Under the pieces are notes generated by a model. That model ran no database searches and was not told the DNA's origin. It saw only the letters and a program-made list of their open reading frames with translations. The translations under genes were made by a program, and so were the position numbers. Positions 37,861 to 64,000 of a stretch of DNA of 64,000 nucleotides are shown one piece after another (position 1 is the stretch's first letter; the number at the start of each line of letters is the position of its first letter). Source of the DNA: Antechinus flavipes (taxonomy: Eukaryota); the NCBI RefSeq assembly GCF_016432865.1, contig NC_067398.1:698306001-698370000 (forward strand), read 5' to 3'.

Positions 37861-39982
37861 CAGGGGGGCTCCGTCTCTTCATCTCTTCCCAGGATCCTAG
37901 ATCTAGAGCTGGAAGGGACCTTAGAGATTTTCTAGTCCGTTTTACAGATGAGGAAACTGAGGCAGAAGGAAAGAAGTGTTTTCTGTAGCATCCCCCAGCT
38001 CTGAGCAAACAGGAAGAATTGTAACCCAGGCCCTTTGTTCCAAACACAGAACACTCTCTCTCCTGTTTTTAACTGCTCTCTTTTTCCTCTCCCTTCATCC
38101 CACCCCATTCCTCCTCCTCTTTTCTTTCCCATGCTCTTCTCCTTCATGCTCCTTAGCATTTTGGGGGGAAGGGGCTCCCACATCCACCCCTGTCCCTGGG
38201 TCCACTTGGGACTTTAACAGGAGGAGGAGGTCTCCAGGCTCCATCCCCATGCAGTCCCCACTTCATCTCCAGACAGCCCCCAGCCCCTCAGAGAGGGGAA
38301 TGCGCAGAGACTCGCTCATTCCCCAGCACACACTTTGAGACAACGTAGATTTTCAGCTGTAAAATACTTTAAGGGTCCATCTTGTCCATTTCACAGGTGG
38401 GGAAACTGAGGTATAGATATTTCCCCAGCGTTCCAGGGGCAGTGAGTATCCAAGCTAGGTCTCAAGCCCTAAGGCCCTATGAGTCAAATCCAGGGCTTTG
38501 GTGTCCAGGCCTAGAGATCATCAGAGGGCCTCCCCCCACCCCCAGTCCATGAAGGAGAGTGCCCACTGTGCCTGCCTTCTGCCAGGACTGTGCCCGCTGC
38601 CTCAGTTCTGGGCACCTCAATGTGCCTTCCTATTGGTGAGCCCAAGGTCTCAGTGCCCTGGCAGAATGGAAACCTGATTTTAGGGAGCTCCTCTTGAAGT
38701 GCCCACCTTGGGTCCAGGAGAGCAAGAAGTCAGTCATCGGAAGGGTAAATGGCTCTGCCCTCTGGGAAATCTTCCTTTTTTAGCTTTGCTAGGTAGGCTG
38801 GGTCAGTCTTCCTACATTTAAAAGAAACAATAACACTGTAATAAAGTCAGTGCTACATTAGTATCTCCTGAGGAGATACATTAGTATCTCCTTCACTTCC
38901 TATCCAATCTGAAAGGCAATCCAGTCTGACTTTGCTCACCTTCCCTTCCCCAAACTCCATCCCCAAGATGGTCGCTGCGTGGGGCACTCTGAGAAATTAA
39001 AGAGCCTCTTTCCTGCTGCTTGGTGCTCCCTGGGCCTTGATTTGGGGGTGGGTGGGTTTTCATAAAATGAATTGCTTGGTCACAGATAGATTTATTGGGA
39101 AAATTGCTTGAGATCCAAAGGGATTCCCCCAGTTTTGAGAGGGAACTTAAACTAGGTTAAAATCAAAGAATTAGCTGTTTTCAAGGAATTGAGGAAAGGG
39201 GGAATCAGAGAAGAAGGTTTAGGCTCTTTTTACTTGACCCCAGAGGGCAGAATTTAGGGGCAACATGTGCAGCTTGTAGAGAGGGACTCAATTTTGACAA
39301 AAAAAGAGACATCTTCCTAATAGTGAGAGCTATCCAAAAGAGGAATGGGTTGCCTGGGGAGTTGCCTCTGAGCAGAGAGGCCGCAGGACCCCTTGTTCTC
39401 ATTGGACCAGATGGCCGCTCTAAGCGTCTGATATTTCACACTTTAGAATAAGTTGTCAAGCACAGAAATCTGCACTCAGGTCTCCTTGAGGGCCACATCT
39501 TTTTCAAGATTTCATAAGGGGAGGCAGTGACCCCTCCTAAGTGCCTGAGTGATCCTCACAACAACCCCAGGAGGTAGGTACTCTTATTACGTCCCCTTGA
39601 CACAAGCAGAAATTGAGGCAGAGAGAGAGAGTAAATGACTTGGCCAGAATCACCTCACTAGTCTGCCCCCGAGACTGTCATTGGGGGTGGGATTGCTTAA
39701 CTGCTACAGAAGGAAGTGTGGACAGAGTGGTAAAGTCTTCAAATGTGGTGGGAGCTCTCAGACCGATTTCTCGTGTGGGTATATTCCTGTTAAACTTGCT
39801 CTGTGGCCTTGGATTCTATTCCTCACCCGGCCCCCTCCCCTGTAAATGCTCAGACCTGAGCGGGGAGGGAGAATGAAGTAAGGATCCATAAATGTGGAGG
39901 GCTCTTTGGTGTAGGTAGCTCAAAATAGAGCCATTTTCATGTGCATTCTCTGTCTTTTCTCTTTCTTATAAAACTTCAGAAG

Positions 39983-40084
39983 ATGCCCCTGATGGCAGAG
40001 TCTTTGAGACGCATCTGCAGGGCAGCGGTTTTGAAGAGGAGACTGAGCAAGAGGCTCTTTCAAGCCCTCAGCGCCACATCCTGA
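39983..40084 (+). other. Upstream ORF (33 aa, MPLMAESLRRICRAAVLKRRLSKRLFQALSATS*) in TPCN1 exon 2 5' UTR
   Basis: ATG at 39983 with A at -3, TGA at 40082-40084, 20 nt before the main ATG; exon acceptor ttcag at 39979. Confidence 0.7.
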
Positions 40085-40104
40085 AATCGGCCGGAGGGGC
40101 AGCC

Positions 40105-40216
40105 ATGGCTGGGAGCGCAGATGATGACGTCCCTCTCATCTTGACCTTGGAGGACAGTGGGAGCACCCCACTGGCACCTTCGGACCGCCTGGGTCCAGAG
40201 AATTTGCCCAATGAAA
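40105..40216 (+). CDS. TPCN1: TPCN1 first coding exon (MAGSADDDVPLILTLEDSGSTPLAPSDRLGPENLPNE)
   Basis: GCCATGG Kozak; DDVPLI dileucine sorting motif; 112 nt, A|gtaagg donor in phase 1. Confidence 0.95.
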
Positions 40217-43200: not shown

Positions 43201-46200
43201 GGCACTTTGGAGCCAACGACAAACAGGAGGCCTTTGGGGTCAGCCAATGGCATACAGTCTGTCCTTGCAAAGGACACCGCTATCTTTTTTTATTTCATCC
43301 TCAGGAAAACAGAAGGGATCATGAGAACTCATATTTCCCTAATACTGTAAGGTAGGCAAAGCCCCTTGTTCACGGCAGTCCTTAAAGACACAGCCCAAGA
43401 AGGAGTGTCCCCATTTTACTGGTAAGGGAACTGAGGCTTAGGGGTGAAACCCCCTGCCCACAGTCACATGGCTGATCTTGCCCTGATATTTTATCTTGTC
43501 AGCATTGCGGTTTTCAAAGACCATTTATTAAGTGACTAATTACATGTGGCACTGCTCTCAAGAAAACTAAAATGTTTACCAAGACGCCCACCTACAGGGA
43601 CTTAGGGAAAAGCCTGAAGCCAATATCAGAATGGATGGGAAGGTGTTTCTGTGACACATCCATGTAAGATGTATTCAGGATCAGAGGTAATCACTGAGAG
43701 CCTCAGTTGGAGAAAAAAAAATTAAGTCACAGGCCACATTGTTGTTTTGTTTTCAAATTGTTGGGTTGGGGTTTTGTCCCTTTTTTCCAACTGGGAACAC
43801 CCGCCATAAATAGTGACTGCCGGAGGAGGTGGCCTCCTGGCCAACTCCTGGCGAGGCAAAGAAGTCCCCATGGGTTCTTTCCAGGGTCCTGAGTGCATGG
43901 CTTCCATTGCAGAATTTGGCATTATCCATAAGGTCGGAGAAGTCTCTGGGAATCTCGCCCAATCTTGAGCAGAGATCATGGGCCACTTGGGTCTTCAGGC
44001 TCCCTCTCACTGTGACCCTTCCGAGCCTGTCTGATCTCATGCTGCTGCACTTGGGAGGGGGCTAGGAAATGGTTTTTCCCTCCACCCCACAAGAGCCCGT
44101 GAAGTTGTGGAGGCGCCTTCCAGGATCAGAAGAGGAATGGGGACACAAGGACCCTTGAGGCTCCTTCTCCATCTGCCCGCAAATAGAACCTGAGACGGAG
44201 GGCAAGATGGACCACTCACCTTTCCTCAGTTAATCCCTTCTGTATTGCTTGAAGGCTTTCGGAAATACTTTCCTCTCCACACTCTTTTGGATAAGTTAGT
44301 GCCAGTGGTATCCCCTTTTTAGATAAGAAAACTGAAGTCTGTCCATTTTCAGACTCATGTAACTAGTGTCAGTGGAGCAGCCACATGAGGCATTTCCAGG
44401 AGCAGGAAGCCCCCCACCTCCCACCGCACCCTCAGCCGGGCAGGGCTCAGAACAGCCAGGACAGAGAGCTGAGATGTTGCCCTGCCAGTGTGTACCGGAG
44501 GGGCCGGTCCCCTTGGTGCATTGGCTGGGCCGGAGATAGCGGCCCAGAGCCTGTGTGGGACCCTGGCATGAGCAGGGCCCTGGACGTGGGGGCGTGTCAT
44601 CTTTGGCCCCGGCAGGTGGCTGCGGCCACGGCAGGAGCGAGAAGCTGCACCAGCAGCTGGAGACCAGCCACAATCAGATTTCCGCTGCCTCCCGACGAGC
44701 GTGGCCAGTGGGCTCCATCGTTGTCGCCGCTCCCGTGGCTTTTTAGGGCCCTGCCAGGGTGGAGTACACGGGGTCGTCAGGCTTGCTGCGGCGCCAATTA
44801 AAATGAGCGAGCTCCAGGCCCGCTGGGCCCGAGCCTCATAACTGAGCCTCGGAGCCTCTCTAGTTCCCTGGCCTTCAGTGTCTCATGGTGGGAGCCTGTC
44901 TGTTGCCATGGGCCCCCCTGCCTCGAAATGCTATTTCCCCTTCTGAAGGCGGGCAGCAGCCCCATCTCAATTGTGGCGGCGGCAGCTGTGCCGTGGTTGG
45001 AGCGCCGCCGATTCCCCATTGCCTTCGGGGGGTCTGAGTTCACATTTGCTCAGAGAGGGATTCATGAGCCAGAACAGTCAGCGTGTACGCCTTAAAGTCA
45101 GTAAAGGGAGCTGGAGAGGTTTTGATGGGTCTCAGCAGGGCATCTCTGGCAGCTTCTGCTTGGAGGACGTGCTCCCCAGGGTCAGCCTCAAGGCCGAGCA
45201 TGGCTGCCTGCTCCGCTTCTACGGGGGCTCTTCTGTTTCAAGGGGAAATGACCTGTGAAGGTGGGGACCCCCTCCTTGCCAAAGGGGAGCTGGTGTGTGC
45301 TCTGCCACGTGGCGCTAGGAAGCAGGGAATACGCAGGAAGAGCCGGGATCTCCTGGCCCTGCTGCCGTGTGCCGCTGGGACCTTGTGGAGGCAAGCCTGT
45401 GCAGGAAAGCTTCTTCCTCTCTCTTTTCAGTGGAATCCCTGAGTCTCAGGAAGGGCTCGGCGGGGCCCCCTTACCCTAATAACACTGACCCTACAGTGAC
45501 CCGGCCAGGCTCTGCTGGCAGACCTCCAGGGCCGGGGAGCCTCACCTCCCGGGGGCCGCCCATTCTGTTATGGGACTCTCCTCCTCCCAGTGAGCCGCGT
45601 CAGTGAATGTAGAGGACCTCGGTCTAGCTCAGTGTTCTGGAAGAGAGATTTCAAAATGAGGAATAATGTAGAAACCCAACTTCCCCTTTATGGGTTGCGT
45701 GAGCTCTCTTGGCCTGGAAGCGCAGTACCCCAGGGACATCCGGCCAGGACAGGCGCTGGCCTCCAAGCTTCCTCTCATTGTCCTGCCCTTCCCAAAGTCA
45801 GACGAGCTGCTAGGGAGAGAAGAACGTGAGAAGTGCTCTGCAGAGCTGGTCACACCAAGGACCCACACAGGACAGTGAGCACCGGGTAGCCCGAGTCTCA
45901 GGGAGAGGTTTGGGCGGCTGTTCCCCGCAAAGCCTTGTGAGGTGGACGACTGGGACGCTTTCCTCATTTTCCAGTAAGAGCCTCCATGAAGGACTCTCTT
46001 CTGCTCAGAGGGACAATGAGGTCTTTTTTGTTGGGCAGAAGTGGGGGACCTTAAAGAGGAAGGAGAGGGAAGGACACAGAGAGCTGGCAGAAGTTCAGGA
46101 CGGGCCACCCTGGAGCAGGGGTGAGATTCAGTCACCTTGAAAGGCCACCTGCCAGAAGTTCAGCCTCATAAACATCCTCTTTTTTTTTTTTTTTTTTGTC

Positions 46201-47069
46201 CTGTAGATTGAACTATTTGTGCTTGTGCATGTTTAAGCTGATAATAAAAAAGGAACCAAAGTTTTTATGTTGCAGTGATGGGTTAGCAGTCACAGAGCAG
46301 ATGCTGCGGCCCCTGGGGGCCTTTGCTCCCTCTTCACATCTCTCTTGCCGAGCTTTTTCTTGAGACAGCTCTGCAGCTGACTGCAGTGGCCCGGGAGCCT
46401 TCCTGGGACAGGGAACCTGGAGGTTGGGATTGATTTACTGGGTGATGGCAAAGGGGACCTGGGGTGAGCTGGTCACGTTCCAGGATTCTGACCGTTACTG
46501 GAAAAGCCTTCCTCTCCCATCGAGCAAGCCTTCCTTAAGCAAGGGATTGGGGCTACAAAGACGAAATGGAGGGGCCGATGTGAGGCGTGGAGAGTTGGGT
46601 ATCTGCAGTCATTTGAGGAAAGAGAGAATAGTGATAACTAAAGGAGAGCAGGAAGATTTCCCAGAGAAGATGGCACTTGAGCTTTGAAGCAGGTGGGGGT
46701 GAGGAGGGGACAGCCTGTGCCAAAGTATGGAGATGGGAAGTATAGAGCATTCTTGGGGGATAGTGGCTGCAGGGAGAAGGAGTTGACAGTCAGCCTGGAA
46801 AATTCAGGTGGAGCCAGAGTATAATGGGTTCTAAATGTGCTGCTTTTGCTTCATCTTTTGGGGGCTCTCTATCACCTTTGGTCTCCTCCCAGAAACAAGA
46901 GTCCTACTTTCAAGTGGCACAGTGAAAGTCTGGTCACGCGGATCTCTTTGCCCGCCCTCAGCTCTTCTCTAGAGCTAGCTAAGGTTCCCTCTGCCTTGGT
47001 CATCATATTCCTTTCCTTTTTCCTAAAAATTTCTAAAAAAATGAACCTGTGCTTTAATCACTGTAGGGT

Positions 47070-47310
47070 TGCTGTTGTTCGGTCACTTCAATCATGCTGA
47101 CCCCATTTGAAGTTTTCTGGGCAAGAGATACTGGAGCGGTTGGCCATTTCTTTCTCCAGCTCTTTTGACAGATGAGGAAACTGAGGCAAATAGTTAAATA
47201 ACTTGCTCAAGGTCACACAGCTACTAAGTGTCCGAGGTCAGATTTGAACTGAGGAAAATGAGTATTCTTGATTTCAGCTCCAGCGCCCTGTGCCATGTAG
47301 CACCTAGTAT
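47070..47310 (-). mobile_element. Mar1-type CORE SINE
   Basis: CORE cctcagtttcctcatctg plus RTE-like tail gctggagaaagaaatggccaaccgctccagtatc. Confidence 0.7.
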
Positions 47311-48962
47311 AGGGAGCTCGCTAGAATTTGTATGGGAAGGAAGAGAGGGTCTCACACAACGAACTGGCTGTGCCGGAGTTATGTAGCTGGTAGGTGTCAG
47401 AGATCCATCTGACCGGGATCCCGGGTCGCGATTCCATATGGCTTCTCACGCCTTTGAGGGCCACAAGGCCCCTATCGCCACGACTCAGGAGGAGCTTCAC
47501 TGCATAATGACAGTTGTTCCTTCCACTTTCTCCTCATTCTCTGAACAAACAGTTCATACGTCACATTACCCAAAAGCCATCTGTGTGGTATTGCTGGCAA
47601 AAAGTCTCCATTACAGACCCAGCCGGTGCAGAAGCCCCCTGCTCTGTGTCCCCATCGAGGGTTTGAATGCCTTTTTAGGAATAGAATTGTTAAAAATGTG
47701 TTAAGGTGGTTATCTATTGAAGGAATCCTTCAATCAAACTTTTGGTAAAATAGAAAATTCTCTTGTAATTCAAAGAGGATTTGGACTGCTGCCTATTGGA
47801 CTTTCCTCCAGCAGGCGAGTCCCGTGGGCATACCTCTCTTGGAGTGGATGCTCCTAAATTAGGGCAGGAAGATCCGGTGATGTTGGTTGCGGGGGCTCAA
47901 TAAGAATGTTTTGGCACTTGAGTCCGGACACATTTGTGCTTCTCTCTAATGGATGCGGAACGTACCTTTTCTGCAGTCATGCTGGGACTTTTATAGATGC
48001 CAAACGATGTGCCACGTGCTGAGTCATCCATGGCACCCGATGCCCTGGGAGGGGCCCTCTCACATGTTTGTTCTTAGAGTCATTGCCATGTAATTTGGAG
48101 CCAGAGGACATTAGGCTGGGCCAGGACTTTGCTCTGCCAATGGCAGCCTCGGGGACGCTGGCCTTGGTGTCCTGTTGTTTTGGGGATGGCCCAGAGAGTT
48201 TCCCATCGTTGCTTTATTTTTCCCCTGATTTCCACATCCCTCACACCAGTCTGGGCCCTGTGTCCCACAACCCATTTCCTGAGCTCCTGCTCCTCCCTTG
48301 TTTTCTCTTCTTTTTTCTTTTTCTTTTCTTTTTTTTTTTCTGTCATCATTGAAAACAAACTCCCACCCAGTCATTGTTCATCGCCAAGACGATGGGCTCG
48401 AGTCCCTCCCTGCGTCCAGAGGTTGCTCCCACTCACTGTCTTCTTCCTGGGCCAATTTGGTCGGGTCGGGCTTTCTGTTTTTTTGAAACGACAGGTCTTA
48501 CTGCCCAGCTGGTTCTTCCGGGAGATGAGCAGATCAGGTTTATCACCAGCAGAGCTCACGGAGCCCCAGGGAGGGCTTTTCCTGTCCCTGCCCTGCCTTT
48601 ATCGCCATCCTGCTGGAGAACAGATAACACTGAAGAACTCGGTCTATTCACATTACTTTGACAGACACGTGCTGAGCGCCTACTGCATGCAACTGGGGTC
48701 GAAGGGGGAGGGCAGACACATTTTCTGCTTACGTGGGTGGCCATCTATTCTCTTGACCACGTGTAGACAAGCTTGTCCTTCCATTCCCCAGCAGCACCCA
48801 CTGCACATTGGAGAAAGCCTTCTCTTCTCAGCTGCTGTTTTTGCTCCTCTTTCTTGCCTTCATCCCAGTGTGCTGTGTAATTAATTAGCATTCCTAATGT
48901 TTCCAAGTGTGTACAGGACAGATGTTCGCCCAGGTGCTATGCTCTTCACTGGGTAAACAGAA

Positions 48963-49096
48963 NNNNNNNNNNNNNNNNNNNNNNNNNNNNNNNNNNNNNN
49001 NNNNNNNNNNNNNNNNNNNNNNNNNNNNNNNNNNNNNNNNNNNNNNNNNNNNNNNNNNNNNNNNNNNNNNNNNNNNNNNNNNNNNNNNNNNNNNNN
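48963..49096. other. Assembly gap (134 N) abutting a (GT)n run
   Basis: Direct reading. Confidence 0.99.
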
Positions 49097-52000
49097 GTGT
49101 GTGTGTGGGGGGGATGGGGAGGTGTGCTCTCAGGATTTTGTTCTTTATGAGTCCCCTTTCCTCCAACAAGTTCATTTAGGCAGAAGCAGAGAATGATGTG
49201 ATGAGCAGCTTAGGAGCTCCCTGAGCGTTCCCACCCCACATAAGCCAAAGTCCACCAAGTGCCCTCTGTCTGCCAAGTGGACACATTGCAAAATGAAGGG
49301 GACGCTGTTCCCTCTCAGTGGGGCTGGCGATGGGGACTCTGCAGTCACAATTATGGGGATGGTTTCAGGAGCATGGAGAGCACTCTACGGGTGGGAAGTC
49401 AGTCCGAAAAGAGAAACACCTTGGGTTTTTGTGGTGTTTAACTGACATTTCTAATATGCTCTTGGGTTTGCTAAAAGCATGTTATTTCCTTTAAACTTAC
49501 CGCGGCCTGGAAGGGGCTTGCGTGTTGATATCTCAGTTTTACAAGTGAGGAAGCCGAGGCTCAGAGAGACTGAGGCCAGATGTCCCCATCCCCCAGGCTA
49601 GTACCCCAAGCTGTCGTGTTGGGAAGAGTTTTCTCTAAAGGCAATCGAGGTCTTCCCACCTTGTTGAGCACTTGGTTTCTTAGCTCTCCGCTGCCTTTCT
49701 CTGATTCTCCAGTGGTGGTCCCTTCCAAGGGGGCTCAGCCTCTGAGACACTGACTTGGAACTTTTCATGTTTTCTGCGGAGCTCCATGGCGGGGCAAGGT
49801 TAGAGCAGGCAGGCCTCCATCCCCAGCCCCCCTCCCACAGCTCCCCCTCCCTCTCTCCTCTATCTCCTTTCTGTTGTCATTTGCCTTCCATCCTCGGGAG
49901 CTTCTTCCTGCCCCGGTCAGTCCCCAGCTACAGCCGGCGATGCTGCTGCTGCTCTCATGCTCCCAGCACTATGGTACAAGCCAGAGGAGATGGGACAGTA
50001 AAGATGAACTTTCAGGATTAGTGATGACCTGGAAGGCCTTTCCAATTCTGACATGTCTCCTCGGCAGTCCCCCTGCCCCGCCTTCCTCTCACCCCTTCAA
50101 AGACTTCTTTCCCTAGAAAGGAACAGGTCACGTGGTTAGTGAGGCTTTGGGCTCCATGATCCCCCAAGAACCTGCATTTGTGACCCTCAGACTGAAGGTT
50201 GAACTCGCTCTTTTTCCCTTCTTGGGGTGGGAGAGGGCGCCAAGCTGCTGGCGGAGAAGCCTTCCAGGCCTTCGGGAGGTCGGCCTGCTGCTGTTGGGCA
50301 TTTCCGTGGCCCTGACGGTTGCCACAGGGTCTGCCCTCATGTTCATCTGTTCTAATGTTTGCTGTTAACGCGGGGCCTTTTGGCTCTCCGTCTTGCTTCC
50401 GTTTGCCAGAACGTGAAGGGCCGGGCAGAGAATAATGTTCGCCCTGCTTCCTTTTGGCAGAATCGCTTCCCGTTGTCTCGAAGACTTTAATCTGGGGACC
50501 TTGGGAAGCACAGCCAGTCCCAGAACCCCAGTTCTGTCGTGCTGCTATACCTAGTCAACCTTGCTGCATTATTACCTCCATCTCCTTTTTCACTATTTTC
50601 CCATGGAGTGGGGCTCCCAGTGACAACTGGCAAATGATGGGGATGATTACTTGTTAGCATTCTGGTGGGGACCCGTTTCTAGAGCGCTCAGAGTGTTTTA
50701 GAAATATCCTCATTTGTCTGCACGATGGCTCCACGAAGTTCAACAAGCAGAGTTCTAACTACGAGGGAGCCGAGGGAGTGGGGCTTGTCCAGAGCCAGAG
50801 TGCGCTAGCCCGGCACCCACGTCACGGCCTTCTGGGGAAAGAAGGGCCGTGGGGAGGGGAGGGGGTTGTGCGTCTGTGTGGAGCTGCATTTTCTGCCCAT
50901 CTTCTCTGAAGCCCGAAAGAGAGCAGAACCCGGACTTGGTCTGGCCCGTGGTCCCCGTCCGGCCAGCGAGACCGCTCCCAGCTCCTCTGCGTCCTAGACT
51001 CTGGTTCTCGTGCCCGAGCCCCCAACGATCCGGCCAGTCTTGGCTCCCCTTCTTCAAAATGGAGGGGTTTTGGTGCAAGGAGTTGTTTCCTTCTGCCTGC
51101 CTCCCCGCTCCTCGCCTCCCCATCTTTGCTTTATGGCCGGCATATGGAAGCTGTTTCTATTTACTCGGCACCGCTAGGACGTAGCCTGCTGCGCTCCAGC
51201 GAACGGAAACCTTGGATTCCCTGCAGGCTCGTTTCTGAGGCTGCATGCAAAGCGGCCAGCTGTTTTGCTGGGAGCGTCTGGGCCGTGTTACATCAGCGTG
51301 GAGGAAGCGTTACCATCTGTGCAGACAGGTCATCCCAGTTTGCTTCTGCCTGCCCTTTGTACCGTGAACCTTTCTAATACTTTGTTTTGGGTTGGGATTT
51401 AAAATAAAATGTTAAGCTTTGCCAGTTCAGCATGGTATGATATCCTTCCCCCTGTACCCAGCCTTCCACCCGACTGGCTTTTTATGTTCACTTATTTAGG
51501 CCGATTGCCATGACTATGGGGAAGCTGAGTTTCGGCTCTGAGTCCACAGGAACTTTCTAAAGCTTTTGCTTAGTTCAGAAATGGGCTGGGCTGCCTCTTT
51601 GTGAGGTGGTGAGCTCCCTGTTACTGTCTGTGTGCAAACCCGGGAAGGATACCTGTCCACTCGTCAGGGTGTTTGTTGTAGCTGACATCCCTCGGGAAGG
51701 TGGCTCTCCACTATGTGACTGATTCGGGAAGGAAGGAGGAATAGATGTTGGGATCAGCTCCCTCCAGAAACTCCTCGAACTGCTCAGGCCTGAGAAGCCA
51801 GAAGCTGCCAGTCCCACAGAAGAGCACCAGCAGAGCAGGAACAAAATGTTTCCCTCTGTCCGACTTTCCCTGAAGGCCTGAGAAAGGATCACCCTTCTTG
51901 CCAAGAATCCTCCCCAGCGGCTGCCCTTGGCCTTTTGAAGAACTCGAGCGAGCAGGGGAACAGAGACCCGGCTGCAGGCCAGGAGAGGCAGCTTTTCCTG

Positions 52001-52102
52001 CTCCCCAGTCCTCCTCCCTCCACTCCCTCCTCCTTCCTCCCTCCCTCCTTCCCCCACCTCTTCTCCAGCTTCCAGCTTGGGGCCCTCCCAGCAAAGGCAG
52101 AC

Positions 52103-52211
52103 ATGCGGAGGAGCGAGCAATCCACCACCTGCCTGGCGGAGACAACACAGAGCGAGCTGTCCGAGAGGCCCATGGTCAGGTCCTCCTATCTCATGGAGCC
52201 GGGCACCCACG
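52103..52211 (+). CDS. TPCN1: Candidate alternative TPCN1 first coding exon (MRRSEQSTTCLAETTQSELSERPMVRSSYLMEPGTH)
   Basis: Long pyrimidine tract with AGs at 52068 and 52075; ATG with G at -3; 109 nt ending at CACG|gtatgc in phase 1, in frame with exon 3. Predicted from sequence only. Confidence 0.5.
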
Positions 52212-55200
52212 GTATGCCCCGTGCGGGAGACAGGATGGAGCGAGGGCGAGGTTGTGGCCTTGGTGATTGGGTAGTGGTTGAAGGAAAGCAAACCCACCCT
52301 CTGAGGGATTATGAAACCAGAGCTGGAGGTTGGAGCCTTGGTTTTGAATGTGAGCATTAATCATTGATAGTGTGGTCTAGTGGAAAGGGCGGTCAGAAGG
52401 CCTGTGCCTGAGGCGCAGCTCTGCCCTTCACCACCTGATTGAGTCTCCTGTGAAGCGAGGGGCTTGGACAAATGTCCTCTGAGGACCCAGCTCCAGATCT
52501 GGTGTAATCTGAGGCCTTTGTCCTAGTGGGACTCCCTTCCAGATCTAGAACCATGACCGATGTTGGGAACCCTTGATCTGTTGCCGGGGTTTGGGCAAGG
52601 GGGAGCAATGAGCCCCACTGCTTGGGCGTCCTCCTGGGAAGGACTTTGGCCGGTGCCTGTCCTTGGAGCATGACAGGGATTGAACAAAAGACTCTGGTGG
52701 GGCAGGAAGGGAGATTTTGGGGAGGGGTCTGGGGGGTGCTGTCCCCAGGGGGAGTGCTGAATGCTGATCACTCAGCTGCTTCTCTGTCCTCTCAGCCAAG
52801 ATCCATGAGGGCAGCTGCCTTACCTGCCAAGGAAATCACCTTAAGATGCTTCCCTTTCACACAAGTACAGGAACTGGTAGAGCCAGAGGGTTGGGTGGGT
52901 GTGAGCTATTATTCTTGGCGGGGATATGGTAATGACAGTGGGGGAGACTGGCTTTGCCCTTTTCCATATGCTGCCCCCCTAAAAATACACATATGCACAT
53001 ACACACACACATGCACACACATGTACATACAGGTGCGCACACATACACATATTCTTTCTTCCCCTTTTCTCCTCCCTCTCTTCTCCCCCCCTCCTGTGGG
53101 CACTCCCTCTCAGACCCCATCCTATGCCATTGTTTGAGCTAGTGGCAGGTCCTTGGGAGCCACCCTGCTGGCTTAGGCTGAGGGGGCAGTTTCCTGGACC
53201 CAGTTGGGGGTTCTTGCTGCCCCCACAAGTGGCTTAGCAGGGTCCGGGGGAACCTTTCATTTTCTCTCTCTTCTCATTCCCAGTAGCCACAGAAAAAGTG
53301 CTCTTTGTGGCCTCTGTGTGACCAACTTGCCCAGAAATTGTGCCCACTGGCCCCATTCTTGAGCCGAATCTTTCTGTGAGACTGCCTCACGCACTGATTC
53401 AGCTTATTTATACACAAGAATCATTCATCTCACCATCTAGGAGGCTTCCCCTCTAGCCTTCCTTTTCTGGGCTGGGCCTGCTCTTGAGCTTCTGGCTACA
53501 TCTCATAATGGGACAGTGAAAGAGGTTGGGGGGGGGAGGCTTTCCCGTTGCCCATTTGGGCCTCCTTTCAAACTGGGCAAAGGCAGGGCAGTGGTAGACA
53601 GGGATAAGCATTCCCTCTGATTAAGGGCTCCCAACTTGGTGTGACCATATGCTATTAAAACGTGCCTCTGGCTGCTGGCATAGGTGAGTTACAAGTAAAA
53701 GAAATCTTGGGGTGGAGGGGTGGAGGACCCTTCGGCGTCCTGCAGTGCTCCAGAAGTCCAGATGTGGAGCCTGGCCTTTTTATCTGGCAGTTCTGGATGG
53801 AGAGCTAAAATACAGTCCCCTCTCTGAACTAGGGATTGAGCCAATTCGTGGTTTTCAAGAATGAAATGGGCCCAGTAGTCAGGAGGATACTGGAAAAAAA
53901 TCCCCGAGCAGTTTGGGAGCTCTCTACCCCACTTGGACCGGGCCTGTGATGAAAGTTATTTTTTTGGAGACGTCTCCAAGTCATTCACTTGTCATTTTCC
54001 TAATGCAAAACAGCCTTAGTGACCCCAAAGCAAGAGAAGTGAGGCTTCAGTACAGGTCAGGACTTCCTCAAGCTGCTCTCCCTCCGTGCTGGAATCCGGG
54101 AGGTGGAGTTTGTGGGCTCTCTGGGCTAGGAGGAGACAACATCTGGCTGGGGTGGGCGTCTTCATTCTCCTGGATACAGTGCCAGGCAGAGAGAGGACAG
54201 CGGACTGCCCAGCACGCATGACCCACCTCCTGGGGTCAGCGCAGATTTATGCCTTCACCATCCAGCGAGCCTTTATTTCAGGTGCCGGCTGGGCCCTCAT
54301 TCGACGTGGAAGTCGCTGTTCAGTTTTGGGGGCCCTGGTAGTCCAGTGAGTTTGAGCCAAGATGATGAAGGAAGAGTCACAGGCAACGTCCCCCCGTGGG
54401 CCCGTTAGTCATTCTGCCGGGCAGCCACAGTCTGTCCCCTCGTTCCAGCCGGCTGCCTCCCCAACGTGTGTTATTCCACAGGAGGGGGACCAGATGAGAC
54501 GGTGGGGAGGGCAGCAACATCCATCACCACGACTGGGGAAACGCTGGTCCTGGGGCACCATCTCGGCAGATTTCTCTGGTGAGGGACCACAGAATTTCCA
54601 TCTTTCTATTCTAATTATGGTTCACGTTGGGGGAAATACAGCCATGTTGTGATTGAATGCTGACGGTAACTGCTTCCCAGGCCCAGATTTCCCACGCACT
54701 CGTGTTCTCCTGAGAGCCATTTTTGGGATCCAGCTGGATGACCCGAGACCCCTTCTGCTGCCAAGGATTTTTGAAGTTCTGATCTGTCGTTAGGAGTCAC
54801 CTGGGTCCTCCCACCTGATGCCTCTTGTAATCCACAGCTCACGTCAGCAAAAAGGCCAGCTGCCGGGCGGGGAAGGACGAGCTCCTGTTTTCCCTTGACG
54901 ATCTTTGGCCCGTGGGGACGCACCCAGAAAACAGCTTCATAAACACTGCCTTCTCACCAACAGTCAGCTGACCCCAAGTACAAAGAGGAAATGGAAAATC
55001 TGTCCAGCAGGAAGAGTTTCTCGCTTGATGCTCCCCCTCAGCTCAGAAAGCAGCCCCCACCCAAGAGCTGGAAGCCCAGCTTGCCCACTCACTTGGCAGG
55101 GCTGCACTTTGGTATCGCACAAGTGGCGAGAGGCAGATTGTGTACCAGGAAGAAGGGGAAATGAAAATCAAGAACGTCTTTTTTAACTCATAGACTTCTC

Positions 55201-57132
55201 TAATTCCAGGCAAAAGCAACCACTAAAGGTGGGATCTGAACTTTTTGCATTGAGTTGCTCTGAAGATGGGGACCCCTGGGTTTTCCCTCACTGAGAATGC
55301 TGCCAGGAAGAGATTCTGGGCCATAAGCTTCTGCTGATTTAGCTCACTGGCATTCCCGTAGACGGAAGGGGAAGCCAACGGATGGCATCTCCACCAGAAC
55401 CGGGGAGCTCTGGAGGCAGAGCACAAACCGGCTATTGATTGGCTTAGGAATGTTTTAGAAAACCTTTGCCATTGTGACTCGTGCCCTTGCCCTCCTTCTT
55501 TGCCCTCACCCTCTCAGATTATTTATTTACTCCATAATTTTGTTCCTTTGCCCTGACTGTTTCTGCAGTGATGCATGAAGGTTGCCGGGGACAGGCCTTG
55601 AGCGTGCTAGGATGCAAAGTGCTTTCCAGATAAATATGGGCTCAATGGGAGGCTTTGGGCCTAAGGCCTCTTGGGACGGGCTTCCTTGAGAAGGGAATTC
55701 TAGGGAATCCCAGAAACCTGCTGGCTGAGATGAGGAGAGAGAGAGAGAACACTCCAGGGGTTGGCAGCCTGGAGGTGAGAGATGGGGACTGGAAGAGGAA
55801 TGAGGGAGGGAGGGCAGTTTATGAAAAGCTGCAAGATTAAATGACTTGCCTAAAGGAAGGAAAAAGGCAAGTGCCATAGGCAGGTTTTGAACTCATTATC
55901 CCAAACCAATACTTTTCCCACTCCACTGATTTTCCACTTTTTATTCTTTTGTCTAGATTTTTATTCATTACGGTCTTTCCTCTGATTATTCAATAACCTG
56001 ATTGTTCCCAGAACTCAGAAATGGCTTCTCCCTCAGTAAAGCAATTGTTTCTGGCAGAGTGATAATGGCAGGCGGGGTGGAAGTGACCCCGGATATTTGA
56101 GGCTCATTCGGCTTCCCTTTGCTGTTACTTTTCTCAAAGAAAAGTTTTCATGACAGTTGTTGGTGAGTTTGGCTTTTTGGTTTTTTGTATGGGACCTGTG
56201 ATTTCTTAGGTCTTAGAATTCCTGATGAGGAAAAACCCCTCTAACAATGCTGATTGGTAACAGTTCTGTCACTTACGAGTGTCTGTGAAGTGACTGGCCC
56301 AGAGTCACACAGCCACCACCTGTTGGAGGTGGGTCTGACTCTGACTGTTCACTCCGGTGCTTCTTGTACATGATCACACGATAGCCTCCATTTATGTAGC
56401 CCTTTGAAGGTTATATGCACATCCTATTTCACACAGAGCCATACGTGCAACTAAGAGGGTGAGATAATGTATGTACATTATCTCACCCTTTTAGTCTTAC
56501 CTTCAGTTTAGAAATATTCCAGCATCAGACTCTTGGACTCCTAAAGCTGCTGTTTTGTTTTCCAAATTAGGATCCCGCTCTCTCCAAATGCCACCTGGAG
56601 GTGGATGGTATCCAGATCACAAGTAGGTTCTGATACAGACCCAGCTGATGTACTTTCCGTTGCAAAATCAGATAGAAGCTGAAAGAGACCTTAGAAATGG
56701 TCTAATCCATACGCGTCAGATCTGCTACCTGAATGCTGCAGGAGGCCCACCAAACCCGAGTGCAGCCTGCCCCAGATTGTCATTGGGATTGTGGTGTTGA
56801 ATTTATCAGTGATACTAAGTCTTTCCCAATTCATTGTTTTTATACAATACCGTATAAATCGTTCTCTTGGTTCTACTCACTTCACTTTGCATCTTGATGT
56901 TCATATAAATCTTCCCAGATTTTTCTGAAATTACCCCCTTCATTTAAGCCTTTCCCCATTTATTATTTTTATAATATTGATGTTACTATATAAATTGTTC
57001 TTTTGGTTCTTCTCACTTGGTTCTCACTTGACTTTGCATCTTGATATTCATATAAATCTTCCCAGATTTTTCTGAAATTATTCCCTATTATTTCTTCTAC
57101 CCCATAAATTGTCCCCCTCCCTCCTCCCCCTC

Positions 57133-57268
57133 CTTGAGGCAGTGGGGTTAAGTGATTTGCCCAGGATCACACAGCCAGGAAGTGCTAAGTGTCTGAGTCC
57201 AGATTTGAACTCAGTCCTCCTAACTTCAGGGTTGGTGTTCTAACTACTGTACCAACTAACTGCCCCTC
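57133..57268 (-). mobile_element. WSINE1-like SINE, diverged
   Basis: Same A/B-box head and gtgtgatcctgggcaaatcacttaacccc body. Confidence 0.75.
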
Positions 57269-58109
57269 CCTTTGTTATTTCCATCGCTGTCATTTATTAC
57301 ATATAATTTGTGCAGCCATTTCTCGGTTGATGAGCATCTAGGGAAGGGGAAAAGAGAATTTAATTGAAAACAAAATTTTCTTAAAAACAACAAAAAAAGA
57401 AAAACATAATTAGGAACAGCTTAACAGAATAAATATACAATGCAACATAGGCAAGTTAATTTTGGTTTTCTAAGTTGATATTCACACTGCAGAGAGCTAT
57501 TTCTATTTGATTTTAAAACCATTGGTCTAATGCAGCCTATTAGTTTACAGATGAGGAAATTGAAGCCTGGAAAAATGAGGTGACTTGGCCATAGTCAGTC
57601 AGACAGGAAATGGAATAGACAAGATCTGTCCTTTCTTTCCATTATACCAGCTCATGTGGTTGACAGTGAAATGGAGAGGGAATTGGCAGAAACACTGGTC
57701 CTTGTGGTATTTGGGAAAGTGTGTTGATGATGAGAACCTGGTGTATTCTGGGACCTCATGAAGCCTGGGCTCGCCCCACTCTTCACCAACTCCCCTAAGA
57801 GCTGTCAGAGCTTTGTCTTAACTTGGGAGTCTAAATTAGACATAATTAGGAAGGTAAATCTGCAGAAAGAAAGTCATCAGCTGGTTAAGTAGCATTTATT
57901 AAGCACCTAAGGCCCAGCTGGAAATGGAAAGAATTGAACTAGGCCCTGCTCTGGAGGAGGCTTATAATTTTGGAAAAGACTAGTAAAGAAAGAATATATA
58001 AAAAGTGAATGGGGTAGTTTAGGGTGGTGTGTGGAAGGGTCAGGAAAGCCTTCTTGAAGAAGGTGAGGCTCCAGGTGGGCATTTTAGGCAGGGATGTTAA
58101 TGCTGGGAG

Positions 58110-58111
<2 letters not shown>

Positions 58112-58151
<40 letters not shown>
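58112..58151. repeat. (GT)n microsatellite
   Basis: Direct reading. Confidence 0.93.
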
Positions 58152-58153
<2 letters not shown>

Positions 58154-58857
58154 ACATGCACATAATAACAAATGGGTTAATTAGGCAGGATGGGGAAGGA
58201 TGAGCAAGAAGGTTGGAAAAGTAGGAAGAATATGAAGGATCAAATGGAGCATGTTCTGTTTGGTCCTAGGGACAGCAGGGAGCTACAAAAGGTTACATAT
58301 CAGACCTGCACTTTAGGATAATCCCTTTGGTAGCAGGAGTGGACTTGAGTCAGAAACACAAGTTAGGAGGCAGATGAACAGGACAGGGAATAGAGGCATC
58401 CTTCACAGCCCTATGCTGGTGCCCTTCCTGGTGGATAGGTCACCCCTGGATTCTCAAAAGTGATGCTAGTGGAGCCCGAGATTGGGAAGGGCCTGCCACG
58501 GTGGCCCGGCTACAGGCCCAGGCCGGGCTCTGGCCAACAAAGGCCAGCCAAATGAAATGCAGGGAGACTGTAGCCCAGGCTGGTCGTGAGTGATGGATGG
58601 CTTGGCCACAACCGCTGGGAGACTATCTTCCAAATCCTAGAGGGCCTGTGAACTGGCCCAGGGAAGGGAAGGCCCACGCCAACAGAAGCGAGAGCCTAGA
58701 AACACGGAGATTGGAGAAGCACACACGCTTTTTTTAAACCTTCCTTGAATCCACTTTTTTCCCCATTTCTGGCCATCAGTGCATCTCACTGTTTAGGTTT
58801 TAAGCTAACTTCTCCTCCTCCACTTCCTCTGCCAACTCTCCATTTTGTCCACCGCAG

Positions 58858-58982
58858 ATGGAGGCAACTGTGTTATCGGCGACTTGAGGGTGTCTACTCC
58901 AGACTCGGGGGATGGGATCCCCTTGAGTCCTACCAGACCCAGCTGGGAAATGAATTACCAAGAGGCAGCAATCTACCTCCAG
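58858..58982 (+). CDS. TPCN1: TPCN1 exon 3 (GGNCVIGDL...WEMNYQEAAIYLQ)
   Basis: ccgcag acceptor, 125 nt, CAG|gtaagt donor. Confidence 0.96.
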
Positions 58983-60440
58983 GTAAGTTTGTGTCTCCCC
59001 TCCCCCTCTCCCCCCTCCCCCCTCTTCTCTCCTCCCCTCCCCTCTGGGCACGGCACCTGGTTTGTCCAGAATGCCACAGTTCAGTTCAGAGCCGAACTTG
59101 TTGATCTACACGGGTCTGATCATTTTAGTCGCTCACTTAAAGTTCAGGTATTCTAAATGTTGAGTGAATTAATGAAGGTCTTAAATCCTGCCCCATCCCC
59201 CGCCATCTGATCCAGAAGTGTAGAGTTAATGGGCCAGAGGGGTCGGCTTTCTTAATATGCTCGGCACCATGGGAGGTGTTGGGAGGGTTATGGCTGGGGA
59301 GGCTCGGGCAGTTTGCTTTTGAAAATTCCTTGGCTTATTATTGAAACGAGTTTAAAAATGTGTCCTAGTCTTTAACTTTTCTGCCATGATCTGCAACTTT
59401 TAGATCTCCCAGCCTAGATTAGTGTTGCTTTCAAGAGAGACTTTCCCTGAATTAATGCTTAAGAATTGATGGTTTCCCCAGTCTCTTTATCCATAGAAGG
59501 GAGATGATGACAGCACCTGCCTCTCAGAGTTGCTGTGAGGATCAAATGAGATCATTTTGTAAAAAAACTTATGAGCACAGGGCCTGGCATGAGGTGGTGC
59601 TCAATAAATGCTCGTTTCTTCCTCCTTTCCTTCCCAGCCTGTGGGAGTCCTGACTCAAGGGCTGAAGTCAGGTCTTTCCACTGGTTCAGCATTTGTTTGG
59701 GCCCCTCAGCAGGTGGTGACCCACAGGGATCGTTCCTGGGGCTGATAATACACAGTTCTTCTCTCTGCCGGTGGCCGAGGTAAAGGGATTGAGCATAGAC
59801 CCAGGAGGTCCCGAGACTTGGTATCTCTTAAACTTAAGATCTGCCAAGTAGTGAGCTAGCCACCGGGCTTACGGATGCCCAGAAGAAAACCTTCTTGCTC
59901 TCAGCCAGCTGGAGAAGATGGCCAGCTCAGAAATAGCAAAGGAACAGGTTTTAGGGCAAGAGGCTGAGTTCCCAAAGGCGCCATCCCCCGGCCCTTTTCT
60001 GACCCTGCCTCCAGCACAAAGACATTTGATGGGAGAAACAGGGCGGCTAAAAGTGGTGTCCGCTTAACCCGAGGAGGGGTTATGGGACAGACTTGAAGGG
60101 GAAGCTCCGGGACTCAGCCCTCATGAGCTGTGGGGAGAGTGTACATGGGGGACTGAGGCTGACGCCTGTGCTTCTGTCCTGTGGTGAACCTGAGGCAGGT
60201 GGATGGAGGGGCTTCTCAGGGGACTCCTGAGAACTGGCCAGGCTTTCCTCCCTTTCCATCCCTCTCCTGTGAATTCTGGTCACATGGCCTTCTCCTAATA
60301 GTGCTCTCTGGGAGGGCCATCCTGCCAAGGCAGGTCTCGGGAACATGAGGTTGCCTCCTCTCCTCCTTTTCTGCCAAGTCTCTCATCCTTCCTCCCACCC
60401 TCTGGCACTGAATCTCTGTCCTCTGCTCTTGGTGTTTCAG

Positions 60441-60617
60441 GAAGGCGAGAATAATGACAAGTTCTTCACCCACCCCAAGAACGCCCAGGGCCTGGCTGCG
60501 TACCTCTTTGTCCACAACCACCTGTTCTACCTGATGGAGCTGACCACGGCTTTGCTCCTGCTGCTGCTCTCCCTCTGCGAGGCTCCCGCTGTCCCCGCGC
60601 TCCGGCTCGGCATTTAT
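60441..60617 (+). CDS. TPCN1: TPCN1 exon 4 ([13 protein letters not shown]...[31 protein letters not shown]), first TM segment
   Basis: tttcag acceptor, 177 nt, TAT|gtaagt donor. Confidence 0.97.
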
Positions 60618-60767
60618 GTAAGTGCCTTCGGGTGTCCTGGGAGAGACTACAGGGCTGGGATGGGGGCACCGAGGGGTGTGAAGAGAGCAAGAGAACAAAC
60701 AGCCAAGGAGAGGACGCCTCATGCATGAGGAGTGATACCCGTCACCCCTTCTGGGGGGCGTCCAGGG

Positions 60768-61749: not shown

Positions 61750-62220
61750 AGGGAATCCAATGATCCCCCCCAAGTTTTTGAAGTCCTGCAAAAATCTTTT
61801 TATGTCTTAGGGAATCCAATGATTCCAGCAGATTTTGAAGTCCTGTAACAGTCTTATCATTTCTCAGAAAATCCAATGATTCCTGAGGGTTTTCAAGTCT
61901 TATGTCTCAAAGAATCCAATGATTCCTGAGGAATCTAAAGTCCTACAACAATCTAATGTCTCAGAGAATCCAATGATTCCTGAGAGTTTTCAAGTCCTAC
62001 AACAATCTTATGTCTCAGAGAATCTAATGATTCCTGAGGGTTTTCAAGTCCTACAACAATCTTATTTCTCAGAGAATCCAATGATTCCTGAGGGTTTTCA
62101 AGTCCTACAACAATCTTATGTCTCAGAGAATCCAATGATTCCTGAGGGTTTTCAAGTCCTACAACAGTCTTATCATGTCTCAGGGATTCCAATGATTCCT
62201 GAGGGTTTTCAAGTCCAACA
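61750..62220. repeat. 54-bp tandem array, about 9 copies, inside the ERV
   Basis: gaatccaatgattcctgagggttttcaagtcctacaacaatcttatgtctcaga recurring with 54-nt period (61912, 61966, 62020, 62074, 62128). Confidence 0.92.
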
Positions 62221-62264
62221 ATTTTTGATGTCCATGATTCAAATGCCATAACTACCATGCTCTT

Positions 62265-64000
62265 TCAGTAGTGGGCACAGTCAGCAACGGAACCACCTGA
62301 TGTTTCTTGGGTCTTCTCTTTCGTTTCGAGGGTTTGCTTTGTCTCTCTGCGATGGACAAGGCAAATATGGCTCATTGGCACCCATCTGATTCCTTCTCCA
62401 CCTGTAGAGATACAAGCAAACCCTCTCCCCCAAGCAGTTAGCCTTTCTGGTCCCTTCCATTCACCACTTTCTGGGTCTCTCCACATCACCTGGTGATTAT
62501 CTAAAGATAGTGGAGCTGCTCGCACTGGACACTGCCCTTCCAGTGGATTATAAAACATGTCTGCTGGAGCCAGTGAATCTTTGTCAAAAATCAAGAAGTT
62601 AATTGTCTAAAGGGTTAGATTTAGACATTCCCTAGGGTTACCTGTGGCTCCCCCTTTCTTTTGTTTTTGGAGGAGCGTCTTAATGTCTCTGTTTCTCCTC
62701 TCTACTATTGCCTGTCCTTGAGAATTAAAGGGTATGCCAGTGGTGTGTAAAATTTTATACTGTGCACAAAAGTGTGCAAAACCTTTGGAGGTATATGCAG
62801 GACCATTGTCTGTTTTTATTGCTTGTGGCACACCCATAATGGCAAATGCTTGCGTGAGGAATTCAGTGACCACTCGGGTGCTGCTGGTATTGCAAAAGTG
62901 AATCCTGAAAAGGTGTCTACCACAACGTGGATAAAAGACCAAAAGATTTATAATGGGTCACATCCATTTGCCAGATTTCATTGAGTCTCAAACCATGAGG
63001 GTTCTTCCCTGGAGGGAGCGTAGGAGCGTGGAAAGGAAGGCAAGCTGTACAGGCTTTTACTATGCTCCTAGCTTCCTCTTTTGTTATCCCAAATTGTAAA
63101 CGCAAAGCTCGAGCAGCCTGATGGTATTTAGAATGGGATTCCTGGGCCTCCTGAAATAAAGGTGTACTGGCTAACATAGTTAAAAGGCTATCTGCCTTTG
63201 AATTCCCATCAAAAATAGGACTTGGAAGTTCACTATGTGAGTGGACATGCAAGATATAAATCTTTCCTGGATGCTTTCTCACTTGCTCCTGAAGTTCCTT
63301 AAAGAGCTGATATATATTAGAAGCTGCAAATTTTATTTGGGCTGTGGCAATTCTTTGTACCACACCTACTGAATAGGCTGAATCAGATATTATATTTATG
63401 TCTCCTGGATAATAAGTGAGAGCTAACATGATCGCATATAATTCGTTCTTCTGAGGGGACTGAAAAGAAGTTCTGACTACTCTTTATAGTTAAGTCATGA
63501 GAGTATACAGCGCAAATATTGTGTTTGGACGCATCTGTAAAGATAGTTGGTCTTTTAAGAGGAACTTTAGAAACTTTTTCTTCAAGAATCCATCACCAAT
63601 TATGTAAAAGTCTGGTTATCTTTAATGGTAACCATTGGAGCCATGGCTAATAAAATTTGCCACTCTGAGATGGTCTCACAGCACACATTAATTTGTGTAT
63701 TGGTGTAAAAGGTGTATATCTTGCCAGATAATTGTACTGCTCGGTTAATGGCCTTTAATAAAATTCTAGCCACAAGCACTGGATAAGGAGTAAGGCTTTG
63801 TTCTGGTTGTGCCGGGAGATTTACCCACTCTATTACACCTTGATGAAGTCTCCTTGATGAAGGACTGCTGTGGGTGCCTCTTGTGTGGCCAAAGTGATAT
63901 TTCCAAGGGTTTTTGAGTGACTCTTTCAACCACATTGGATAAAGCCAGTTCAACTTCTCTCAAAGCCTCTTGAGCTTCTTTTGTAAGTTGGCGTGGTGAA
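62265..64000 (-). pseudogene. ERV pol pseudogene: RT connection, RNase H, integrase
   Basis: SPRQLTKEA, TIFTDAS, NELYA, SDSAY, HHCC finger (HSKYH...CTAC), [40 protein letters not shown]; broken by several frameshifts and stops. Confidence 0.95.

Follow-up and report, generated by a model that had tools for sequence, protein, structure and literature searches.

Introduction

Alternative 5′ ends of TPCN1, the gene of two-pore channel 1 (TPC1), have been described before. For Tpcn1B, an alternative promoter in the interval from exon 2 to exon 3 is used, and the transcript begins directly in front of exon 3 (Ruas et al. 2014, PMC4386455; Ruas et al. 2015, PMC4516428). Its product, TPC1B (deltaN69), is translated from the exon-3 methionine behind an untranslated leader and is without the first 69 residues; its location continues to be endolysosomal, though shifted towards late endosomes and lysosomes (PMC4386455), and it still supports responses to nicotinic acid adenine dinucleotide phosphate (PMC4516428). 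Tissue-specific alternative first exons are also on record for a eutherian, in the form of the human TPCN1 first-exon variants FLJ54008 and FLJ54674, which are listed as brain-specific in a paper that gives neither position nor sequence for them (PMC2780955, Table 3). The window analyzed here, a stretch of 64,000 nucleotides (nt) from Antechinus flavipes, carries the 5′ part of TPCN1 on its plus strand. Inside the 18.6 kb intron 2 lies the element under study, an open frame at 52103–52211 that is probably a conserved alternative 5′ exon of the gene.

The candidate resembles Tpcn1B in that the 5′ end would lie between exons 2 and 3, the dileucine motif of exon 2 would be bypassed and the channel body from exon 3 onwards would be intact. 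Unlike Tpcn1B, it would not be continuous with exon 3 but form an exon apart, 6.6 kb further upstream (4.0 kb in the eutherian contig L003, described below), and it has its own donor and in-frame ATG, by which it would add 36 residues rather than truncate the protein. Because of this separate position, the donor and the in-frame ATG, the candidate is not Tpcn1B. It does share the features of alternative first coding exons, namely an ATG of its own, a matching exit phase, a similar coding length and a frame that is incompatible if both exons are included. Unlike the tandem-duplicate type of such exons, it does not resemble exon 2 in sequence (alignment score 15, shuffle p 0.78), which rules out a tandem exon duplicate. 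No alternative coding N-terminus of TPC1 is described in the open-access literature searched. If real, the candidate adds an alternative N-terminal exon to a gene for which alternative 5′ ends are on record, and it may already be present in automated annotations.

Structure of the Candidate Exon

The candidate is preceded by a pyrimidine tract with two acceptor-like YAGs (52010–52075, plus strand), in which 55 of the 57 positions over 52010–52066 are pyrimidines. Both YAGs are CAG (52066–52068 and 52073–52075), and their AGs at 52067–52068 and 52074–52075 would place the exon start at 52069 or 52076, with the acceptor 34 or 27 nt before the candidate start codon. This codon is the ATG at 52103, which has a G at −3. 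From there the candidate coding part (52103–52211, plus strand) runs through 36 open codons plus one nucleotide and leaves in phase 1 at the donor CACG/GTATGC, the exon–intron boundary being 52211/52212. The predicted peptide (MRRSEQ...EPGTH), within which SEQSTTCLAETTQSELSER would be a product of initiation at 52103, is rich in Ser and Thr (11 of 36) and has no [DE]xxxL[LI] motif. The ratio of observed to expected CpG at the candidate exon is 0.28–0.34.

The donor lies 6,646 nt upstream of exon 3, which starts at 58858. Joined to it, the single exit nucleotide completes the split codon G/AT for Asp, and the reading frame continues as H-D-GGNCVIG. With 109 nt against 112 nt, the coding part is close in length to that of exon 2, and the exit phase is the same. 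Depending on the acceptor, the whole exon would measure 143 or 136 nt, and neither length keeps the frame after exon 2: the shifted frame meets a TGA in exon 3. The tract with its AGs, the ATG, the open codons, the donor, the in-frame junction with exon 3, the coding lengths and the loss of frame after exon 2 had been claimed in an earlier sequence-only reading of the same DNA, down to the presence of DDVPLI in exon 2 and the absence of such a motif from the alternative peptide, and each was found where it had been placed.

Taken by itself, the window shows no more than chance would give. In intron 2 there are 14 combinations of an ATG with a phase-1 donor of equal or better score at a distance of at least 60 nt, located at 5–6 places, and each of the three forward frames stays open through the candidate exon. 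Only the comparison between species lends support that exceeds chance.

Conservation at a Eutherian Locus

Searching with the frame of exon 4 returned 63 fragments, several of them named by their source as two pore calcium channel protein 1. Two genomic contigs reached in this way, L003 and L004, extend 10 kb upstream of exon 4, and their exon-3 and exon-4 peptides are eutherian. We take both to be non-human. When 14.7 kb of the window (46000–60700) was compared with L003, just five colinear blocks aligned: 50319–50695, 51088–51382, 51821–52227, exon 3 and exon 4. The third of these contains the candidate exon. Cluster look-ups for closer relatives of L003 returned the same species only.

Over the candidate coding part, 52103–52211 aligns with L003 2288–2396 without a gap and with 67 of the 109 positions identical, while the best of 20,000 shuffles reached 48. 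The ATG (L003 2288) is kept within its context GGCnGACATGCnGAGG, again with G at −3, and the donor CG/GTATGCC is kept as well. The distance from ATG to donor is exactly 109 nt in both species, with zero indels between them. In L003 the frame is likewise open (MLRRGPAV...ERCLC), and it leads into L003 exon 3, about 4.0 kb downstream of the donor, in the same phase and again through G/AT for Asp. L003 also has a pyrimidine tract and a CAG, 19 nt before the ATG, which would give an exon start at 2269 and an exon length of 128 nt; use of this acceptor would remove the nearest upstream ATG. The sequence-only reading had listed a lack of conservation of ATG, frame or donor in other marsupials or eutherians among the things that would speak against its proposal, and all three are retained in L003.

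Past the exon boundary, the donor GTATGC and the first intron bases (52212–52227, plus strand) are identical at 12 of 16 positions, and there the conserved block ends. Beyond it, identity falls to 26% of the alignment columns (44% of the ungapped ones), which is the level of unrelated sequence; the block thus ends where the exon would end. On the other side, similarity continues directly upstream of the ATG through 51821–52102 (plus strand; L003 2048–2287), with 61% identity over ungapped columns and 6 gap events. This upstream part may be DNA of promoter-like character or may belong to the exon as its 5′ portion.

These data bear on another reading, in which the open frame of the candidate arose by chance in neutral intron sequence and has no function. 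The 5–6 comparable pseudo-exons in intron 2, together with the absence of expression evidence and of protein matches in our searches, are what such a frame would give. However, a gapless eutherian alignment of 61% identity that 20,000 shuffles did not equal is hard to reconcile with neutral sequence, all the more as nearly all of the remaining intron cannot be aligned to L003. We consider a neutral origin very improbable.

The joint retention of the exon features was set against the behavior of the three flanking non-exon blocks. In these, a trinucleotide is retained at a rate of 0.33, a GT at 0.45 and a frame at about 0.44, and the chance of an open frame in L003 is about 0.46. On these rates, ATG, GT, frame and openness of the frame would all be retained by chance with a probability of about 0.03, with the block boundary not counted; a single species pair underlies this figure, which is a rough estimate and not a formal test. 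Gap events in the flanking non-exon blocks number 16 in 961 columns, or about one per 60.

We therefore regard a conserved alternative 5′ exon as the best explanation of the region, since the eutherian contig keeps the ATG and the donor, the distance and frame between them, and the block boundary.

Evidence against the Exon and Alternative Explanations

Several observations weigh against this explanation, and they fall into three groups. The first concerns the signals themselves. The donor is of just moderate strength: by an approximate position weight matrix (PWM) built from textbook frequencies, it scores 5.7 bits in the window and 4.9 in L003, compared with 7.9 for the donor of exon 2 and 12.7 for that of exon 3. 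Open frames are cheap in GC-rich DNA and are common nearby, where 34% of the 36-codon windows in the window and 46% in L003 are open. A second ATG shared by the two species within the block (51846; L003 2072) lies in a different frame in each of them, so an ATG can also be conserved by coincidence. Finally, conservation rests on one other species, and no counterpart of the candidate exon was found in the gecko contig (L001). In the fish loci L005 and L007, neither the strongly conserved non-coding element described below nor the candidate exon was found.

Some of this would be expected if 51821–52227 were conserved regulatory DNA and not an exon, part of an enhancer or promoter cluster at 50.3–52.2 kb that had its ATG, open frame and GT by coincidence. 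A strong non-coding element 440 nt away is retained as far out as gecko, and the frequency of open frames, the second ATG out of frame between the species, the lack of codon periodicity and the contigs of related organisms that run straight across the donor (both described below) all agree with such an origin. On the other hand, regulatory DNA behaving like the flanking blocks would seldom have kept ATG, GT, spacing and open frame together, the block stops 16 nt past the donor as it would at a true exon–intron boundary, and the absence of indels from 109 nt contrasts with the gap frequency of the non-exon columns. We judge it unlikely that the region is regulatory DNA and nothing else.

The second group concerns coding. 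Peptide identity between the window and L003 is 11 of 36 residues (31%). Nucleotide identity is 21, 23 and 22 of 36 at codon positions 1, 2 and 3, without bias, and the ratio of nonsynonymous to synonymous differences (pN/pS) of the candidate is 0.86, with similar values in the other two frames. By themselves, these values would speak against selection on a protein. Exon 4 served as one control and gave 57, 58 and 45 of 60 identities by codon position with a pN/pS of 0.09. The other control was the first 28 codons of exon 3, its variable part, which gave 16, 14 and 15 of 28 identities, that is 50–57% at every codon position, and a pN/pS of 0.76. The TPC1 N-terminal tail evolves freely and the codon-selection test is without power here: it cannot decide, because the variable part of exon 3, which is certainly coding, behaves alike. 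What speaks for coding is the conserved spacing, the conserved ATG and the fact that this ATG is the first one after the acceptor if exon 2 is skipped.

The weakly conserved peptide would also fit an exon that is real but provides no new N-terminus, either as an untranslated leader, with translation from the exon-3 methionine as in TPC1B, or as a frame-shifting cassette exon inserted after exon 2 and leading to nonsense-mediated decay (NMD). The exon has the make-up of such a cassette, with a length that is not a multiple of three at any of the acceptors (143 or 136 nt in the window, 128 nt in L003) and a premature stop in exon 3, and the protein of the mouse and human 5′ variant already starts at the exon-3 methionine (PMC4386455). 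Against this, an untranslated leader would not need the exact 109-nt spacing, and in a message without exon 2 the AUG at 52103 would be the first one behind the acceptor, in frame and with G at −3, so that scanning ribosomes should use it. An exon of this kind, without a swapped N-terminus, seems to us rather improbable.

The third group concerns expression. Splicing was looked for in Logan contigs from related organisms, 90–95% alike, a form of data in which rare forms are dropped. Contigs of the runs X1, X5 (an RNA metatranscriptome) and X9 cover 51400–52900 colinearly and unspliced, and no joints were found in them at either acceptor or at the donor. As rare forms are dropped and the junction span lies outside the coverage, these unspliced contigs neither show nor exclude use of the exon. 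No indel is listed within 52103–52211 in either related organism (about 5–7% divergence), which is weak support for retention of the frame.

Among 1.84 billion cluster representatives, the 36-residue peptide had 0 matches. A word-index protein search returned no match for the 141-residue frame around the exon, nor for the frame of exon 3, and a metagenome scan with the 141-residue frame found nothing. These blanks are weak evidence, because query length restricts the word-index search and any isoform would fall into one cluster with the canonical protein. One protein drew brief attention, a partial gecko sequence (P0023) with a divergent N-terminus and faint similarity to the candidate (shuffle p 0.012; nothing by BLASTP). 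Its N-terminal residues lie directly upstream of gecko exon 3 (L001 10001–10088, Gekko kuhli), and it was rejected as intron read-through. Independently of the candidate, this partial TPC1 model starts with 29 read-through residues, which reflect an annotation artefact or else a 5′ extension resembling that of Tpcn1B.

A possible link of L003 to Tpcn1B itself was likewise discarded. A 12-mer of the mouse Tpcn1B primer recurs in L003 some 70 nt upstream of the ATG, with 0 of 7 matching positions in the flanks, and is put down to chance; the published size of the Tpcn1B amplicon places the primer 28–39 nt from exon 3 in the cDNA.

Proposed Alternative Isoform

If the exon is used, it would replace exon 2. 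It could be spliced from the non-coding exon 1 through the pyrimidine tract and one of the CAG acceptors (start at 52069 or 52076), or transcription could begin at a promoter in the conserved DNA just upstream of it. The donor at 52211/52212 would then be joined to exon 3 at 58858, and translation would begin, in frame, at the first AUG of the exon. This would yield a full-length TPC1 whose first 37 residues, DDVPLI among them, are swapped for a 36-residue tail, probably disordered, and its mRNA would be without the conserved upstream open reading frame (uORF) of exon 2. The splicing, the use of the AUG and any effect on the channel are what we infer from the DNA sequence. That the exon is used in place of exon 2 and translated as a swapped N-terminus, as the sequence-only reading proposed, is to our minds slightly the better bet. 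The structural part of that proposal draws support from its conservation in L003; the peptide is matched at few positions, and no fragment of a transcript or protein that carries it was found in the searches.

The same reading expected altered trafficking from the loss of the dileucine motif, and here the literature is unsupportive (PMC2992283, PMC4386455). In TPC2, an N-terminal acidic dileucine is required for lysosomal targeting, and without the motif the protein goes to the plasma membrane (Brailoiu et al. 2010, PMC2992283). Human TPC1 lacking residues 3–12, also when the C-terminal dileucine is mutated in addition, keeps its intracellular distribution (PMC2992283). DDVPLI of exon 2 fits the [DE]xxxL[LI] signal known from TPC2 and the alternative peptide is without it, but the signal is reported to be dispensable for the localization of TPC1, and its loss does not predict relocation because the TPC1 deletions and mutants keep their distribution. 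Given the published data on N-terminal deletions of TPC1, trafficking would probably change to a modest degree; a subtler difference in sorting or regulation is possible.

Neighboring Features of the Window

The canonical exons were placed by their reading frames: those containing DDVPLI, WEMNYQEAAIYLQ and EGENNDKF lie at 40123, 58944 and 60441, respectively, among the open reading frames of the window. Exon 2 (about 39979–40216, plus strand), with ATG at 40105 and DDVPLI, aligns with positions 144–375 of a rodent RNA contig (L009); its coding part runs from that ATG to 40216 and ends at the donor AAA/GTAAGG. Exon 3 (58858–58982, plus strand) is preceded by cag, requires phase-1 entry, contains WEMNYQEAAIYLQ and ends at the donor CAG/GTAAGT. 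Exon 4 (60441–60617, plus strand) reads EGENNDKF...GIY.

The leader of exon 2 carries a 33-codon uORF (39983–40084, plus strand). Its start (ATGCCCCTGATGG), length and ending (TCCTGA) are identical in the window and in the rodent RNA contig (L009 149–250), which suggests conserved translational control of the canonical TPCN1 mRNA.

Two of the blocks aligned to L003 lie upstream of the candidate exon. Block 1 of this intron-2 cluster, a conserved non-coding block at 50319–50695, is 64% identical to L003 702–1072 and adjoins a weakly CpG-enriched patch at 50.8–51.4 kb. The strongly conserved non-coding element at 51088–51382 is 77–85% identical to L003 1524–1805 and 65% identical to Gekko L001 8877–9107, a segment that lies about 1 kb upstream of gecko exon 3. 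Within the element are the E-boxes CATATG, CAGCTG and CATCTG and an octamer-like motif, ATGCAAAG, and from these features and its conservation it is probably an enhancer.

Around these elements, at about 49.1–55.7 kb, the contigs from related organisms are 3.3–6.6 kb long, have a word depth of 15–28 and come from small runs (155–650 million letters). They are colinear with the intron at 90–95%, and two of them begin about where a run of 134 N (48963–49096, within intron 2) ends. Since this depth is too high for single-copy DNA, abundant unspliced RNA over the region is possible. By self-BLAST, 49.1–55.8 kb is not repeated within the window.

Downstream of exon 4, a minisatellite at 61776–62222 (units of about 54–57 nt, 5.9 copies, 92% match) yields long repetitive open frames on both strands. 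It adjoins a retroviral pol remnant on the minus strand (62268–63429), in which RNase H, integrase zinc-binding, integrase core and C-terminal DNA-binding domains sit in separate broken frames. An Rfam scan of the window found no RNA family.

Implications

Taken furthest, the comparison of the marsupial and eutherian loci would mean that therians share a third, undescribed TPC1 isoform, with an exon that dates to the ancestor of marsupials and eutherians, a fast-evolving 36-residue tail and an mRNA that has escaped the uORF; we put this forward tentatively, as somewhat less than an even chance. If true, TPCN1 would have two leaders with different translational control, exon 2 with the 33-codon uORF and the alternative exon without it.

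The discovery of Tpcn1B put in question those mouse Tpcn1 knockouts in which just the 5′ exons are disrupted (PMC4386455, PMC4516428). A second conserved bypass of exon 2 would, if true, add to this caution, since it would keep a full-length protein with a new tail. Should the exon be present in mouse, Tpcn1 alleles that remove just exons 1–2 could still make a near-complete channel.

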